Shown here piece after piece: positions 42,569 to 57,143 of a stretch of DNA of 64,000 nt. The translations under genes and the position numbers were made by a program. How positions within the stretch are numbered: position 1 is the stretch's first letter; each line of letters starts with the position of its first letter. The notes under the pieces were generated by a model. That model had not been told where the DNA came from and searched no databases. It saw only the letters and a program-made list of their open reading frames with translations. The DNA lies in sequence record NC_004629.1. One strand, 5' to 3'.

Positions 42569-43354
42569 ATGCATCGTCGAACTATGTACAGATTTAGCTT
42601 ATCATATTCCAATAAACTTATTAATAATAACCCACTTGGCTTTACAGTCGAGAGTTATCTTGAAAGCTGGTTTGACAAACTCAAGTGCCGATTAACTAAA
42701 GGTTATACCAAAAGCCATGCTATTCATTTTCGTGGAAGTTGGAAATACTTTGAGTTAGATCAATATAAGAACAATGCTTTCTTCAATCAATATCACATGG
42801 TGATGCAGTCACTAGAGGATCTAGAAAGAAAGATTAGTGGGGTGATTGGGTTAAGTATCAAAATCACTAAACCAGAACGACATTTATTTCATGTTCTATT
42901 TAACCATGAAAAGATTATTCTATCCCCTAATGGCATTATCTTTGATGTACGTGTTCCAAAACACACCGTGATAGCTAATCCTGAAGTTATGGGATATCGT
43001 AATTGCAATGTAGATAGACTGGCGGTATTTGGCGAGCGCTCTAAAGTTAACTATGTGGTTAAACAAGTACGTTATGCCTTAAAGCAGAAAGGGGTGACAA
43101 CTGTTGCCAATAGTTCAATGGCTCGTTTTTTACATGACCTATTTCATCCAAAATACAGAGACAATCAAATTTATAACTACGGCATGACTATGTCTGATGT
43201 TTATGTAATGGCCGTATTCAAAAATGGGTATACGGAAATCTATGGTAAAGATGTAGGTGAAGTATTTGAAAGTCATACTCTAGATTTCCTAGAGCGTGAG
43301 TACATGATCTGTGGACAATATTTTCCCATGTTATCCAGAGGGCTGCTAGTATGA
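42569..43354 (+). CDS. hypothetical protein, paralogue of 41675..42511
   Basis: AGGA RBS; CNVDRLAVFGERSKVNY. Confidence 0.8.
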   Translation: MHRRTMYRFSLSYSNKLINNNPLGFTVESYLESWFDKLKCRLTKGYTKSHAIHFRGSWKYFELDQYKNNAFFNQYHMVMQSLEDLERKISGVIGLSIKITKPERHLFHVLFNHEKIILSPNGIIFDVRVPKHTVIANPEVMGYRNCNVDRLAVFGERSKVNYVVKQVRYALKQKGVTTVANSSMARFLHDLFHPKYRDNQIYNYGMTMSDVYVMAVFKNGYTEIYGKDVGEVFESHTLDFLEREYMICGQYFPMLSRGLLV

Positions 43355-44877
43355 TTATAGAGACCTTATTGCAATATTACGCCATGTTCATCGACATCTC
43401 TCAAAAGAATATGGTGATGGGTGGTGCGATTGGTATGGCGATTGGTGGTGTATTATGGACCACTATCCGAGGTCTACCAAGTAAGATAGTTAGATTCACA
43501 TTAAATCAATTTACAGTTAGTTTACATATCACTAATACTGGTAATGGTTTAAATGAGAAAAACTTTGACTCATTTATGGAGTGGTATATTAAACAACCAT
43601 TAGCTGGATTTAATCGCCGTTTTTCAACCAACGTTGATGAGCAAAGTTATAGTGCAACTAAACAGAAAATTGGTGTTGGTTTTGGCTTACATTTCTTTCT
43701 GTTTAAAGGTAGGTTATTCTGGTTTGTAAAAGCACGCCGGGATAGCCAAAATGCCAGTCGAGACCAGATGGACATTACTATCCGTGGATTATCTAGAAGT
43801 AGTAAACTTATTATTGATTTAGTTGATGCGTACCACTGGCGTCCAAATGAAATGGGTCTTACTATCTCACATTGGGATGGTAATCGCTGGGGTAATGAAA
43901 TCGAAGTTACTAAACGCGATATCAACACGGTGATTTTGCGTAAAGAGATCAAAGAAGAATTCCTTAATAAGATTGAAGAATTCTATTCTGATCGGAAATG
44001 GTACGATGATCGTGGACTACCCTATAAATTCACTTGTGTTCTAACAGGTCCTCCTGGTACTGGTAAAACCTCAATCAGTAAAGCGATTGCCTCACATTTT
44101 AATAAAAATGTTAGTGCACTGTCATTAGCCTCTATGACCAATGATAGTCTTAGGCGGGCATTTACTACACTACCTAAAGGTAATATTCTTCTAATTGAAG
44201 ATTTCGATGATACCCCGGCAGTTAAAGATCGTGTTTTAAATGATCCTGTAAAACTAGATAAAGAGATAAAGGAATTAGAGAGGAAATATTCTTTTATTGA
44301 TTTAATTGAAAAATATCCGTCTGCATGGGTTGATCTTAAAGATGACTATGAAGGATACTCTGTAGTTGGGTTTAATGACACCATCTATATCTTTGATGAA
44401 AATAGCGATGATCAAGGTTTTGGGATAAGTGCTTATGCTATGGCTGAACTGGGTGTTTCAAAATGGGCCGATGAAAAAGATCCATTATTTACCACAATTC
44501 GCCGATGGTGGAAATTAAAGAAGTGCATGAAGAATGGAATCACGTATGAACAACCAGCTAGCGGATTAACTTTGTCAGCTCTATTAAATGGGCTAGATGG
44601 CATTGTTCCACTAGATGAGACTATGACCATTCTAACTACAAACCATCCTGAGAATATTGATAAAGCACTTCTAAGGAAAGGTCGCGTTGATTACATGGTG
44701 GAGATTCCATATCTACGAGATCAAGAAGTTAGGGAGTATATTAAACTAATGTTCCCTGACTTCGATATTCCTGAAGATATCAGATTTAAAGATCAGCCAG
44801 GGTGTGATGTAATGGCGGCTTTTTCAAATAACCGTTATGACCCTAATGCTTTTATCAATAGTCTATTGAAATATTAA
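43351..44877 (+). CDS. BCS1-like membrane-anchored AAA+ ATPase
   Basis: N-terminal TM, GPPGTGKT, LLIEDFD, LTLSALLNGLDG, ILTTNHPENIDKALLRKGRVD. Confidence 0.85.
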   Translation: MIIETLLQYYAMFIDISQKNMVMGGAIGMAIGGVLWTTIRGLPSKIVRFTLNQFTVSLHITNTGNGLNEKNFDSFMEWYIKQPLAGFNRRFSTNVDEQSYSATKQKIGVGFGLHFFLFKGRLFWFVKARRDSQNASRDQMDITIRGLSRSSKLIIDLVDAYHWRPNEMGLTISHWDGNRWGNEIEVTKRDINTVILRKEIKEEFLNKIEEFYSDRKWYDDRGLPYKFTCVLTGPPGTGKTSISKAIASHFNKNVSALSLASMTNDSLRRAFTTLPKGNILLIEDFDDTPAVKDRVLNDPVKLDKEIKELERKYSFIDLIEKYPSAWVDLKDDYEGYSVVGFNDTIYIFDENSDDQGFGISAYAMAELGVSKWADEKDPLFTTIRRWWKLKKCMKNGITYEQPASGLTLSALLNGLDGIVPLDETMTILTTNHPENIDKALLRKGRVDYMVEIPYLRDQEVREYIKLMFPDFDIPEDIRFKDQPGCDVMAAFSNNRYDPNAFINSLLKY

Positions 44878-45237: not shown

Positions 45238-45891
45238 ATGGCGTCAATCATTAGTCTACCTTTTATCAAACTAGTAATCAGCCGTAATAATAATTACACT
45301 GTTAACCATCAGTCAGGTGCTGATAATGTACCTCATCTATGTGTTAAAGTAAAACATTCTAACGGTTATGCCTGGTTCGGTATTATCATTGTTGATTATG
45401 AAAAACGTACCAGTGGTTGGACTGAAGAAGAATTCAATGCAGTTGTAACTCGTTTCCATGAAGCAATGAATTCTCAATGTGATATCCAACGATTAGAAAC
45501 AGACATTAACCGACTAATGGATTCCATCCAAGATGTTGTTACTGGTCGGAAACGACCAACCCTATTCGGCGGTGATAGTAATGACTTCATTCAAATGCAT
45601 CTTCAAAATAATATCCAACTTGATATTTATCGGAATGAAATTAACGAAGATACTCTAACCTATGGTGGGTATCGTGGTAAAGTAAGTCTTCGCCATGGTT
45701 ATGATGAATACAGCTTCTTCCTGTATCATCGTGGTATTATTCTAAACCATTACATCGATGCAGAGATTGCTAAAGAGCTAATTGAAGATGCTCTTAATAA
45801 GACTTTCCCGGAGATTACTTATCTACCGCGAGCCACTGTCGAACCTACAGCAGTGGAACGCACTCGTAATAGACATCTGGATAAAAGTTAA
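45238..45891 (+). CDS. hypothetical protein
   Basis: AAGGA RBS. Confidence 0.8.
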   Translation: MASIISLPFIKLVISRNNNYTVNHQSGADNVPHLCVKVKHSNGYAWFGIIIVDYEKRTSGWTEEEFNAVVTRFHEAMNSQCDIQRLETDINRLMDSIQDVVTGRKRPTLFGGDSNDFIQMHLQNNIQLDIYRNEINEDTLTYGGYRGKVSLRHGYDEYSFFLYHRGIILNHYIDAEIAKELIEDALNKTFPEITYLPRATVEPTAVERTRNRHLDKS

Positions 45892-46306: not shown

Positions 46307-46447
46307 AAAATAGTAAAAGAAATACACTATTCTATGTAGTTCCTTTACGATTGCTCTTTTATCTTAGTTTCAGTTTTGCTGAAGAAGTACCAATGAGATA
46401 CCCTCCCCTGATCGGGGAGGGTTTTTGACATCTAAGAGGAAAATATA

Positions 46448-46828
46448 ATGTGCGAACAACATCGTGTAGTATCTATGAAAGTTACATGCACGCAAGCTCG
46501 CTATCCGATCGGTCTGTGCGATCTCGGATTTGATAATGCTGCTGATGCTCGGCAATATCTACTAGATGTCGTCGAGTACAATATGGATCGTCTCCACCCA
46601 CAACATGCTAATACATTCCAGCTACAAAATCTACAAGACGGGTTCGTAGTATCCTACGATATCGAAAAAGATGGATCCGTTTATCTTCGGTTAACACTGG
46701 CGGCTGTAGCTTATCAATCAATCGATCTTGAGTTGGGGGTTACCGTTAAAGAAAATGAAGGGATCAGTGTTGTAATCAAAAATTGGATCAATGGTGATTA
46801 TACTGCGGGGAACAAATACTTGCAGTAA
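46448..46828 (+). CDS. hypothetical protein
   Basis: GAGGA RBS. Confidence 0.75.
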   Translation: MCEQHRVVSMKVTCTQARYPIGLCDLGFDNAADARQYLLDVVEYNMDRLHPQHANTFQLQNLQDGFVVSYDIEKDGSVYLRLTLAAVAYQSIDLELGVTVKENEGISVVIKNWINGDYTAGNKYLQ

Positions 46829-46837
46829 TACCATATG
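46814..46837 (+). promoter_or_regulatory. bipartite promoter AAATAC-N14-TATG
   Basis: C of AAATAC at 46819, G of TATG at 46837: same 18-nt offset as the seven - strand sites. Confidence 0.65.
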
Positions 46838-46957
46838 TAAAGAATACCCAAATCGGGATCTCCCGGACTATCTCCCTTCAGCGTTCCCGTCCGCAAATGA
46901 AGGTGCCGCCGAGATCCCACCTATTGATAATGCCCTCCCTTCGGGGAGGGCTTTATT
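46837..46957 (+). ncRNA. candidate structured small RNA (possible pseudoknot)
   Basis: own promoter, GC-rich, 8-bp stem gggatctc/gagatccc, crossing pairs cggac/gtccg and ccttca/tgaagg, ends in terminator 46932-46951. Confidence 0.6.
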
Positions 46958-46994
46958 TCGCTTAAGCCTATTTATTTTATTATAAGGAGTGAAA

Positions 46995-47726
46995 ATGACA
47001 TATATCGTAAATGATGGTAAAGTCATGATTGCAGACTGCCTATTAATTGAGCGGAATAATGCAACTGATAGCATTGGGCGACTTCCAGTATTAGATAACG
47101 GTTATATTGATCTAACTGCTAAAGCTGAAGGTGTAGATGTATATTACAATGATTGCCACAAGATAATTTTTCATCCGACTGTTACTTGGCAAGGCAAACG
47201 TGTTAAAACTATGGCTTTTGCTGGAACTATAGATAATGTTTATGATCTATTGAATGCCCTTACCGCAGGTGTTGATTTAGCTGATTGGTTTAAAGTTGAA
47301 GTAAATATCTTGCCAGTCATAGAACGCAGGTTGTTTAATGGTAATACTTCTATGATGTTCACTATGGAGAATGGTGACATATATACAGTTATTCTTAAAG
47401 ATATGAGTATCGAGATCACCAAGAAAGATTGGGCTCATTTAGGTAGTGGTGTAGATGCAGTTAATAGTGTACTTGAGTTTATCCCTAATTGTAATGATAA
47501 TGGATCAACCAAACTAACTGCACTTGAAGCATTTGCTATTGCATGTGCACATACTACTACTGTAAGTCGTAAATTTGATTATTACATCCATGCTACAGGT
47601 GAGTACAAGCAAAATCAGGAACTATCAACTAAACAACTAAAATGGATTCTGGCGCGTATTCAAAAGCGGATGGATCTTACCTGCATTTTCAATGACCGCG
47701 AATATGCCAATAACATATGGGGTTGA
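46995..47726 (+). CDS. HslV/proteasome-like Ntn-hydrolase
   Basis: M-T start (Thr nucleophile position), DGKVMIAD, K, FAGT, LGSG, ALEAFAIA: layout typical of phage HslV-family peptidases; AAGGAG RBS. Confidence 0.55.
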   Translation: MTYIVNDGKVMIADCLLIERNNATDSIGRLPVLDNGYIDLTAKAEGVDVYYNDCHKIIFHPTVTWQGKRVKTMAFAGTIDNVYDLLNALTAGVDLADWFKVEVNILPVIERRLFNGNTSMMFTMENGDIYTVILKDMSIEITKKDWAHLGSGVDAVNSVLEFIPNCNDNGSTKLTALEAFAIACAHTTTVSRKFDYYIHATGEYKQNQELSTKQLKWILARIQKRMDLTCIFNDREYANNIWG

Positions 47727-47731
47727 TTTGT

Positions 47732-48247
47732 ATGAGTGATTCTAATATGGATATGCTATATTACACTAATGTAAATTGGGAACAATATTTTCATCACGTG
47801 AAACAACGGGCAGATGATACTGTTAAAGTAATGTATAAACCTGAATATGAAGATCTTATTGATGAAGCATGTAGACCATTGATTAAATGGTTTAACCAAT
47901 TCACCAATATTGCAACTATTTATTGCTGTTCAGGTCATGTTGATGAAGAAACTGGTGGTAGCCCTGGATACATTAGTATTTTATTTCAAGATACCAATGC
48001 AGAGAATTCTGTAATGCGTTTATTGCGTGAAGCAATGTGTAAGGGGCGTGAGTGTAAGATCCCATTCGAAATTGAACTGGGGGTTTATTTCGGGCATCTA
48101 CATGAGACCATTGATAAAAATCACTGGGTCGCCAATCTAATTATCCGCACCAATAGCTACAAACGTAAAAATACGTATGATCGCTATTGGCATCGTCTTT
48201 ACAACATCATAACAACATGTAATACTGAGGGTTTATACACCATCTAA
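47732..48247 (+). CDS. hypothetical protein, possibly TYW3-like fold
   Basis: IDEACRPLIKWFN...ATIYCCSGH resembles the TYW3 ID..I..L...N...T..SCSGR motif. Confidence 0.45.
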   Translation: MSDSNMDMLYYTNVNWEQYFHHVKQRADDTVKVMYKPEYEDLIDEACRPLIKWFNQFTNIATIYCCSGHVDEETGGSPGYISILFQDTNAENSVMRLLREAMCKGRECKIPFEIELGVYFGHLHETIDKNHWVANLIIRTNSYKRKNTYDRYWHRLYNIITTCNTEGLYTI

Positions 48248-49604: not shown

Positions 49605-49627
49605 CATACTAGATAGCTGTAAGTATT
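49605..49627 (-). promoter_or_regulatory. bipartite promoter AAATAC-N14-TATG
   Basis: TATG G at 49605, motif C at 49623. Confidence 0.6.
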
Positions 49628-50059: not shown

Positions 50060-50082
50060 CATATTAAATAATCTGGAGTATT
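50060..50082 (-). promoter_or_regulatory. bipartite promoter TAATAC-N14-TATG
   Basis: TATG G at 50060, motif C at 50078. Confidence 0.6.
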
Positions 50083-50474: not shown

Positions 50475-50497
50475 CATATAGTGTATATGAAAGTATT
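50475..50497 (-). promoter_or_regulatory. bipartite promoter for tRNA-Thr
   Basis: TAATAC-N14-TATG; G at 50475, 12 nt before the tRNA. Confidence 0.65.
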
Positions 50498-53421: not shown

Positions 53422-53444
53422 CATATTATTACAATCTGAGTATT
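53422..53444 (-). promoter_or_regulatory. bipartite promoter upstream of the split tRNA-Asn
   Basis: TAATAC-N14-TATG; G 53422, C 53440. Confidence 0.6.
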
Positions 53445-57120: not shown

Positions 57121-57143
57121 CATAACATGTAATGCTAGGTATT
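57121..57143 (-). promoter_or_regulatory. bipartite promoter for tRNA-Leu/Pro
   Basis: AAATAC-N14-TATG; G 57121, C 57139. Confidence 0.65.

Follow-up and report, generated by a model that had tools for sequence, protein, structure and literature searches.

A small RNA encoded upstream of PHIKZ289 in phage phiKZ belongs to a conserved structured RNA family of Pseudomonas jumbo phages

Introduction

Very few RNAs of lytic phages have a known function, and transcriptome surveys of phiKZ-like phages list dozens of short fragments of 5' untranslated regions (5'UTRs) among which products and by-products are not distinguished. Here, we analyse one such fragment, a 120-nt RNA encoded between the genes PHIKZ288 and PHIKZ289 in a 64,000-nt stretch of sequence record NC_004629.1. 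This stretch (the window) corresponds, at 100% identity, to the final 64 kb of the Pseudomonas phage phiKZ genome; phiKZ genome positions equal window positions plus 216334, and the coordinates given below are window positions, on the plus strand for the RNA and its neighbouring genes. An earlier reading of the letters of the window, made without database searches (the sequence-only reading), had proposed that the locus is an unannotated, stand-alone small RNA gene with a possible pseudoknot.

The closest described system is the group of 17 "5'UTR-derived" candidates listed for phiKZ by Putzeys et al. (Table S7), of which the RNA studied here is one. It has the class layout of these candidates, namely a promoter, a terminator immediately after it, and two read-through modes. 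Putzeys et al. give coordinates and a single-sequence folding energy, and they note conservation of the candidates within the genus only (PMC10914365); their account is without a cross-genus family, covarying structure, invariant loops or a long form. A second relevant case is sRNA005 of phage 201phi2-1 and the phiKZ small RNA upstream of gp182 (PMC11512511), which are likewise 5'UTR small RNAs kept among giant Pseudomonas phages. sRNA005 was defined by ONT-cappable-seq and a common predicted fold (PMC11512511), but it lies at another locus, upstream of a tail protein gene, and its phiKZ sequence in Table S7 is unlike the present RNA. The 201phi2-1 member of the family described below is approximately 470 nt long and would therefore have been excluded by the <250 bp filter of that study (PMC11512511). 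Earlier studies of phiKZ RNA are silent on the locus: Wicke et al. reported zero phage small RNAs and Gerovac et al. reported two, at other loci. What singles out the phiKZ RNA is the comparative evidence, which comprises covarying helices and two loops that are frozen despite only 21-45% identity of a neighbouring protein, together with its persistence in two settings, alone at 120 nt and as one domain within 370-470 nt. The transcript itself was known already; as far as we found, the literature describes neither the covarying cross-genus family nor the invariant loops and the long form that belong to it.

Processive antitermination RNAs such as put of phage HK022 are compact structured RNAs that lie between a promoter and a terminator ahead of genes that need read-through. 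The likeness of the phiKZ RNA to them is one of position only, between a promoter and a terminator. It differs in that the phiKZ polymerase is non-canonical, in that its short terminated product has been mapped as a unit in its own right, and in that the hairpin of relatives can form part of a far larger RNA. GOLLD and ROOL are large phage-borne structured non-coding RNAs (ncRNAs) encoded near tRNA genes. Only the long form of the family described here resembles them, as a phage-borne structured RNA of several hundred nucleotides in genomes with tRNA genes, but the long-form loci are unmatched by the Rfam models of GOLLD and ROOL at E <= 1 and the long-form RNAs are shorter.

We regard the phiKZ RNA as a well-founded candidate for a functional RNA of nucleus-forming jumbo phages. 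Phages of this kind are under development for therapy against Pseudomonas aeruginosa, and the locus offers the field a defined structure in which two defined patches can be probed.

Results and discussion

A mapped transcript with its own promoter and terminator

The RNA locus sits in a 166-nt gap between PHIKZ288 (46448-46828) and PHIKZ289 (46995-47726). The gap carries zero annotated features in the GenBank/RefSeq record, and the description "unannotated" is accurate for that record but not for the literature, as the RNA is already an ncRNA candidate in Table S7 of Putzeys et al. The final codons of PHIKZ288 overlap the promoter of the RNA. Yakunina et al. identified TATG, with the G as +1, as the motif at which the phage non-virion RNA polymerase starts transcription (PMC4666361), and phiKZ middle promoters are marked by an AAanTTACc-like element near -24 (about 20-24 nt upstream) (PMC4666361). 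Both parts of a middle promoter are present at the locus. The upstream element AAATACT occupies positions 46814-46820 and TATG occupies positions 46834-46837 (-3 to +1), so that the promoter motifs AAATAC (46814-46819) and TATG are where the sequence-only reading had placed them, with G46837 as the expected +1. The same layout (AATAC, 14 nt, TATG, TA) is also found upstream of tRNA-Thr (50475-50497), tRNA-Asn (53422-53444), tRNA-Leu (57121-57143), PHIKZ292 (49605-49627) and PHIKZ293 (50060-50082), these five all being on the minus strand, and the tRNA-type arrangement that had been claimed is thus borne out. Because this layout precedes phage tRNA genes, the small RNA falls in one promoter set with the phage tRNAs. 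A loose pattern for the promoter had 16 matches in the window compared with 8.2 expected, and none of the shuffled sequences reached 16.

The ends of the transcript have been mapped by ONT-cappable-seq of phiKZ (Putzeys et al., Microlife 2024; PMC10914365; bioRxiv 10.1101/2023.10.13.562163), with a positional tolerance of approximately 2 nt (PMC10914365). Promoter P130 is listed as a "middle promoter" with its transcription start site at 263172, which is window position 46838 (Table S3; bioRxiv 10.1101/2023.10.13.562163), at the 3' edge of the start motif (46834-46838). Terminator T119 is placed at 263292, which is window position 46958, with an ARNold energy of -18.6 kcal/mol (bioRxiv 10.1101/2023.10.13.562163). 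Between them runs the primary transcript TU198 (46838-46958), a unit of 120 nt without an annotated feature, whose longest extension reaches 264292 and covers PHIKZ289 (Table S5; bioRxiv 10.1101/2023.10.13.562163). Table S7 lists it as a 120-nt "5'UTR-derived" ncRNA candidate of PHIKZ289, with an empty validation entry and no northern blot (bioRxiv 10.1101/2023.10.13.562163). The features by which Putzeys et al. define such candidates are all found here: a primary 5' end with a recognisable phage promoter, termination inside the 5'UTR that yields a fragment of <250 nt (TU198, ended by T119) alongside a longer read-through form, and no open reading frame (ORF) preceded by a Shine-Dalgarno sequence. 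The transcript from this locus is real and already catalogued as an unvalidated candidate, and the discrete product of about 120 nt starting near 46837 that the sequence-only reading had predicted agrees with both published ends. The term "stand-alone" was only partly right: the RNA has its own promoter and its own terminator, but reads from P130 also extend across PHIKZ289.

The terminator predicted from the sequence (46932-46951) was also confirmed. T119 (46932-46958) consists of an 8-bp stem with a 4-nt loop (hairpin 46932-46951) followed by a TTTATTT tail, and by eye it agrees at 27/30 positions with the published degenerate 30-nt terminator motif of phiKZ, a C-rich/G-rich hairpin plus a TTAT-containing tail that occurs at 61 genome sites. 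The hairpin region is repeated at 10-13 places in each phiKZ-type genome, and in relatives the stem has a different sequence with pairing retained. The tail that follows the hairpin is conserved among relatives because T119 fits this generic motif; a second promoter at the conserved tail was considered and rejected on the same grounds. T119 also ends the units that begin at the upstream starts P128 and P129 (PHIKZ287-288) (bioRxiv 10.1101/2023.10.13.562163), and thus the transcripts of PHIKZ288 too. No other promoter was mapped between T119 and PHIKZ289, and no mapped promoter elsewhere serves PHIKZ289 (bioRxiv 10.1101/2023.10.13.562163), which is reached by read-through of T119. A separate short transcript lies upstream of PHIKZ288 (46337-46426, plus strand), a published 89-nt "5'UTR-derived" candidate with the early promoter P129 and the terminator T118.

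The body of the RNA (46855-46918) has a G+C content of 62.5% compared with 35.2% for the window, in line with the earlier remark that it is GC-rich against an AT-rich background. The statement that there is no credible ORF needs a qualification, as a 64-codon ORF (46791-46985) spans the gap; it is the only ORF across the RNA and its start lies within PHIKZ288. The substance of the claim stands, because no reading frame over the RNA is open throughout all family members, and in PhiPA3 and one uncultured relative each of the three forward frames of the core is interrupted by stops. The RNA core is non-coding.

A nested hairpin with covarying helices and two invariant loops

The conserved core of the RNA (46855-46918) is a nested hairpin of four helices, as judged by minimum free energy (MFE) and centroid folds, covariation, RNAalifold and a covariance model. 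The outer helix P1 (8 bp, 46855-62/46911-18) is followed by P1b (3 bp, 46864-66/46906-08), an asymmetric internal loop with 8 nt on the 5' side (46867-46874) and 2 nt on the opposite side (46904-05), P2 (6 bp, 46875-80/46898-903), P3 (3 bp, 46881-83/46892-94) and an apical loop of 8 nt (46884-46891). The arms of P1 and of P2 are perfect inverted repeats, exactly as the sequence-only reading had them. A single-stranded spacer (46919-46931) separates the core from the terminator; within it, positions 46920 and 46922 are invariant in the family and positions 46921 and 46923 nearly so. The predicted fold has an energy of -46.3 kcal/mol (z = -4.6), and 0/200 shuffled sequences were equally stable.

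Covariation was examined on 7, 15 and 22 sequences. The seven sequences, aligned with MAFFT, pair in 97.9% of cells, and both sides have changed in 15/20 pairs. A covariance model was built from this alignment and then used to gather further members; in the window its only match, at 46855-46918, scores 94.5 bits (model R1). With all 22 distinct sequences, pairing holds in 94.1% of cells and 17/20 pairs have compensatory changes. The covariation score of the 22 sequences is 0.776 compared with 0.242 in shuffled alignments, none of which was as high (0/500), and when the pairing partner was slid by 1-3 columns as a control, pairing dropped to 36-48% of cells. RNAalifold, which was run independently, recovers the same helices.

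Twenty positions are invariant in all members (22/22). They include a run of five consecutive bases in the internal loop (46870-46874) and, in the apical loop, 46884 together with five consecutive bases at 46886-46890. The identity of the core to that of phiKZ is 39-66% for 20 of the 21 other members and 94% for T2P. About 46 near-identical phiKZ-type isolates have only one or two differences over 167 nt. A 7-mer that spans the invariant internal-loop bases (46870-46876) recurs 12 nt upstream in P1 (46858-46864), in phiKZ and T2P only.

The sequence-only reading had drawn the structure as an H-type pseudoknot or a switch. The complementarity behind this idea is present in phiKZ, where cggac (46864-68) could pair with gtccg (46889-93) and would then cross the P2 helix (46875-80/46898-903). 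In relatives, however, only 68.6% of cells of the crossing helix pair and 0/5 of its pairs have a compensatory change, whereas the two nested helices that compete for the same bases pair in 100% of cells, with compensatory changes in 5/6 pairs. The RNA is thus a nested hairpin and not an H-type pseudoknot, and since the crossing complementarity is lost in relatives, the pseudoknot is no more than a chance feature of phiKZ.

Distribution of the family

All lineages of phiKZ-like Pseudomonas jumbo phages that were examined have the RNA family, once per genome. Its 22 distinct members come from Phikzvirus, Pawinskivirus, Miltoncavirus, Serwervirus, Tepukevirus and Phabiovirus, and from unclassified or metagenomic jumbo phages. 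Among isolates, the RNA is present in phiKZ and 45 near-identical records and in the T2P group (all Phikzvirus), in RVTF4, D6 and Viktualia, in Psa21 (Tepukevirus), Phabio (Phabiovirus), PhiPA3 (Miltoncavirus) and 201phi2-1 (Serwervirus), and, within Pawinskivirus, in PA1C, HPP-Temi and six similar phages. About a dozen more variants were found in IMG/VR and metagenome contigs, and those contigs that are long enough to judge measure 290-325 kb. The first pattern used to collect members was too loose, giving mostly chance matches in coding DNA, and was replaced by a tighter reverse-complemented pattern; the search pattern gave one match per whole jumbo-phage contig. The same element was found upstream of PHIKZ289 homologues in more distant phages, and a search for loci seeded with an alignment of gp289 returned only loci that were already known.

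A stringent pattern run against 185,579 bacterial and archaeal genomes gave 10 matches, none of which is a member of the family (best 19.7 bits, partial), although diverged copies would escape such a pattern. With Rfam 15, tRNAs alone passed in the window and the RNA was below every gathering threshold. In a permissive Rfam search of 46600-47100, the best matches had <=20 bits, compared with thresholds of 41-80, and rested on the terminator.

The RNA lies in a syntenic locus. A homologue of PHIKZ287 is present in 65 records, all of which are Pseudomonas jumbo phages, and in each of them (65/65) it is found a few genes upstream of the RNA. Downstream, a gp289 homologue follows the RNA within about 1.3 kb at 11/17 loci, and the identity of this protein to that of phiKZ ranges from 21% to 45% across relatives; the locus is syntenic even in PhiPA3, where the identity is 21%. 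The first downstream gene is of three kinds. It is the gp289 homologue in phiKZ, T2P, PhiPA3 and PA1C; it is an ORF for a membrane protein of 56-77 amino acids, followed by the gp289 homologue, in RVTF4, D6, Psa21 and others; and 201phi2-1, Phabio and three uncultured phages have a gp425-like gene in this place. No gp289 homologue was found in 201phi2-1 within a 46.7-kb stretch around the RNA.

Short and long forms

The family occurs in two forms. The short form, which consists of the hairpin, a spacer of about 13 nt and the terminator, is found in phiKZ, T2P, RVTF4, D6, Psa21, Phabio and seven metagenomic variants. In the long form, the same type of promoter is followed by 370-470 nt without a conserved ORF and by one terminator at the end, and the hairpin is one domain of this RNA, accompanied by further conserved blocks. 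Long forms are found in PhiPA3, PA1C/HPP-Temi, 201phi2-1, Viktualia and five uncultured phages (in our locus numbering, PA1C L193:2098-2470, PhiPA3 L152:3154-3540, 201phi2-1 L195:17057-17530 and Viktualia L006:32-520, with the uncultured loci L230, L215, L198 and L226). The long form of 201phi2-1 corresponds to positions of about 287,056-287,529 in NC_010821. Two long-form stretches fold better than shuffled sequences (z = -5.3 and -3.8), and the long form has an invariant long-range helix and another helix in which 5/6 pairs are compensatory. Searches of the long-form loci gave zero matches to Rfam at E <= 1, and ARAGORN found zero tRNA or tmRNA genes in them. The 3' part of the long form was not found in the 64-kb window by nhmmer, nor in any Phikzvirus record by a BLASTN search of all phage records. 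Some annotated coding sequences that lie on top of the conserved RNA are probably spurious, namely L006:86-367 and L006:447-536 in Viktualia and L194:2218-2435 in HPP-Temi.

Possible roles of the RNA

The locus is a real ncRNA gene, and we favour the reading that the family hairpin is a putative recognition module and that the product is a stable RNA acting in trans. Transcription starts at the TATG of a middle-class promoter, laid out as for three phage tRNA genes, and the standard phiKZ intrinsic terminator ends the RNA at 120 nt, with some polymerases continuing into PHIKZ289. The two invariant single-stranded patches would be kept by the helices in a fixed geometry, ready for a partner common to all these phage-host pairs, and this partner is more likely to be a protein than an RNA. 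The RNA would most likely act in trans as a stable species made alongside the phage tRNAs, and read-through into PHIKZ289 would be a by-product of a terminator that is shared with the upstream operon. Both the recognition role and the trans action are inferred. Trans action is favoured because the first downstream gene varies between lineages, because the terminator is of a generic type that the upstream operon uses as well, because no antiterminator alternative exists, and because the module persists inside a much larger RNA. Taken as a whole, this statement might equally well prove right or wrong.

Several points weigh against it. A by-eye search of the long forms and of downstream start sites for a conserved partner of either invariant loop found none. 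The source paper lists the candidate without northern validation (bioRxiv 10.1101/2023.10.13.562163), and the evidence consists of transcript ends and sequence comparison. The pair counts lean towards the fold because the covariance-model alignment is fitted to the structure, although the MAFFT-only alignment (n = 7), which is free of the covariance model, agrees on the fold. The RNA always lies directly upstream of a gene in the same orientation, an arrangement that fits a cis-acting leader equally well; the frequent presence of a gp289 homologue close downstream and the absence of any other mapped promoter for PHIKZ289 (bioRxiv 10.1101/2023.10.13.562163) count in the same direction.

A cis-acting 5' leader or attenuator is the main alternative explanation, possible but less than likely. 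The nascent hairpin would set the passage of polymerase through T119 into PHIKZ289 (or, in relatives, into the gene for the small membrane protein and the gp289 homologue that follows). It could do so through a bound protein or small ligand, or it could act on the phage polymerase itself, as processive antitermination RNAs do. All short-form members have promoter, structured RNA, terminator and gene in this order. The source paper places the RNA among the 5'UTR-derived candidates that arise via premature termination, with a longest unit that covers PHIKZ289, and the lack of a mapped promoter from T119 to PHIKZ289 and the synteny with gp289 homologues, down to that in PhiPA3, agree with this explanation. 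Riboswitches and attenuators have the same arrangement of a conserved structured domain, then an intrinsic terminator, upstream of a gene. They are marked, however, by mutually exclusive terminator and antiterminator structures, whereas the MFE and centroid folds of the phiKZ RNA keep hairpin and terminator as separate elements 13 nt apart, with no alternative pairing between them. The sequence of the terminator stem is unconserved, and hence there is no fixed antiterminator partner. Riboswitches also precede one functional class of gene, which contrasts with the three lineage-dependent kinds of first downstream gene seen here and with the 201phi2-1 locus, which is without a gp289 homologue nearby. 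In addition, T119 is of the generic phiKZ type and serves the PHIKZ287-288 units upstream as well, the RNA has no Rfam riboswitch match, and the long forms hold 300-400 nt more RNA than an attenuator needs.

The remaining explanations appear less probable still. A regulatory RNA that acts by base pairing, with the CU-rich invariant internal loop as a seed against Shine-Dalgarno-like purine tracts in phage or host mRNAs, is unlikely. The bases 46870-46874 are single-stranded in the conserved fold and complementary to a GGAGA-type ribosome-binding site, and the RNA has two features of an Hfq-type small RNA, in that a candidate seed is conserved and single-stranded and the intrinsic terminator carries a U-rich tail. 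By reading, however, the complementarity to start regions just downstream amounts to 3-5 bp and is lost across relatives; any CU-rich loop fits Shine-Dalgarno sequences, and the equally invariant apical loop is left unexplained. That the phiKZ RNA is an evolutionary remnant of the 370-470 nt RNA, without a function of its own, is very unlikely. Long and short forms have the promoter, hairpin and terminator position in common, and the 3' part of the long form was traced neither in the window nor in any Phikzvirus record, both of which speak for a remnant. However, the short form is spread over at least five divergent lineages (phiKZ/T2P, RVTF4, D6, Psa21 and Phabio) as well as seven metagenomic variants, and all of them keep the loops unchanged and the helices compensated, unlike decaying sequence. 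The idea that an H-type pseudoknot or switch serves as a decoy, for example as a mimic of a type III antitoxin, is the least probable of the explanations weighed here. It draws on the crossing complementarity found in phiKZ, which relatives do not maintain and which is outdone by the nested helices. ToxI-type antitoxins are, like the phiKZ RNA, small structured RNAs linked to phages or plasmids, but the phiKZ RNA is without a repeat array, a conserved pseudoknot or a toxin gene: a search for tandem repeats at the RNA found zero, and the neighbouring proteins tested had zero matches to toxin families.

Returning to the trans-acting recognition RNA, we tentatively suggest a more specific form of it, which we hold to be possible but less than likely. 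The family may represent an undescribed class of structured RNA restricted to phiKZ-like Pseudomonas phages, with a short form of ~120 nt and a long, multi-domain form of 370-470 nt, that is transcribed with the tRNAs and is either a putative component of a dedicated ribonucleoprotein or a putative decoy that engages a Pseudomonas-wide host factor. If so, the class would add a functional RNA to the life cycle of nucleus-forming phages and would not be a by-product of termination.

Neighbouring genes

The neighbouring proteins PHIKZ287 and PHIKZ289 point to no RNA partner. The family of PHIKZ287 (45238-45891, plus strand) and the RNA locus are found in the same set of Pseudomonas jumbo phages (65 records). 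Its structural model is confident, with a predicted local distance difference test (pLDDT) score of 79.9, yet has zero matches in the PDB or in Pfam/NCBIfam, and the protein therefore offers no functional lead for the RNA. PHIKZ290 (47732-48247, plus strand) has a match below the cut-off to the TYW3 tRNA-modifying methyltransferase (E = 0.002, 18 bits compared with 27), which is probably noise. The small membrane ORF that lies between the terminator and gp289 in RVTF4, D6, Psa21 and metagenomic relatives (L003:1271-1504, L004:1286-1504 and L005:1334-1504) has a stop that overlaps the next start, and is missing from phiKZ and T2P.

PHIKZ289 (46995-47726, plus strand) looks like an N-terminal nucleophile (Ntn) hydrolase of the proteasome-beta/HslV/Anbu type, judging from homology and a predicted structure. 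It has a PHROG match to the HslV family (E = 1e-5), and all of its homologues have threonine directly after Met1 (serine in PhiPA3). The model is of medium confidence (pLDDT 70.6), and its best PDB matches are proteasome-family chains with TM scores of 0.38-0.47 (among the best 50 of 98 matches, E <= 0.001). The PHIKZ289 family is tiny, with six clusters among 5.8 billion proteins. Three genes upstream, PHIKZ286 (43351-44877, plus strand) encodes an AAA+ ATPase with a BCS1 N-terminal domain, and it is possible that PHIKZ286 and PHIKZ289 form a putative unfoldase-peptidase pair.

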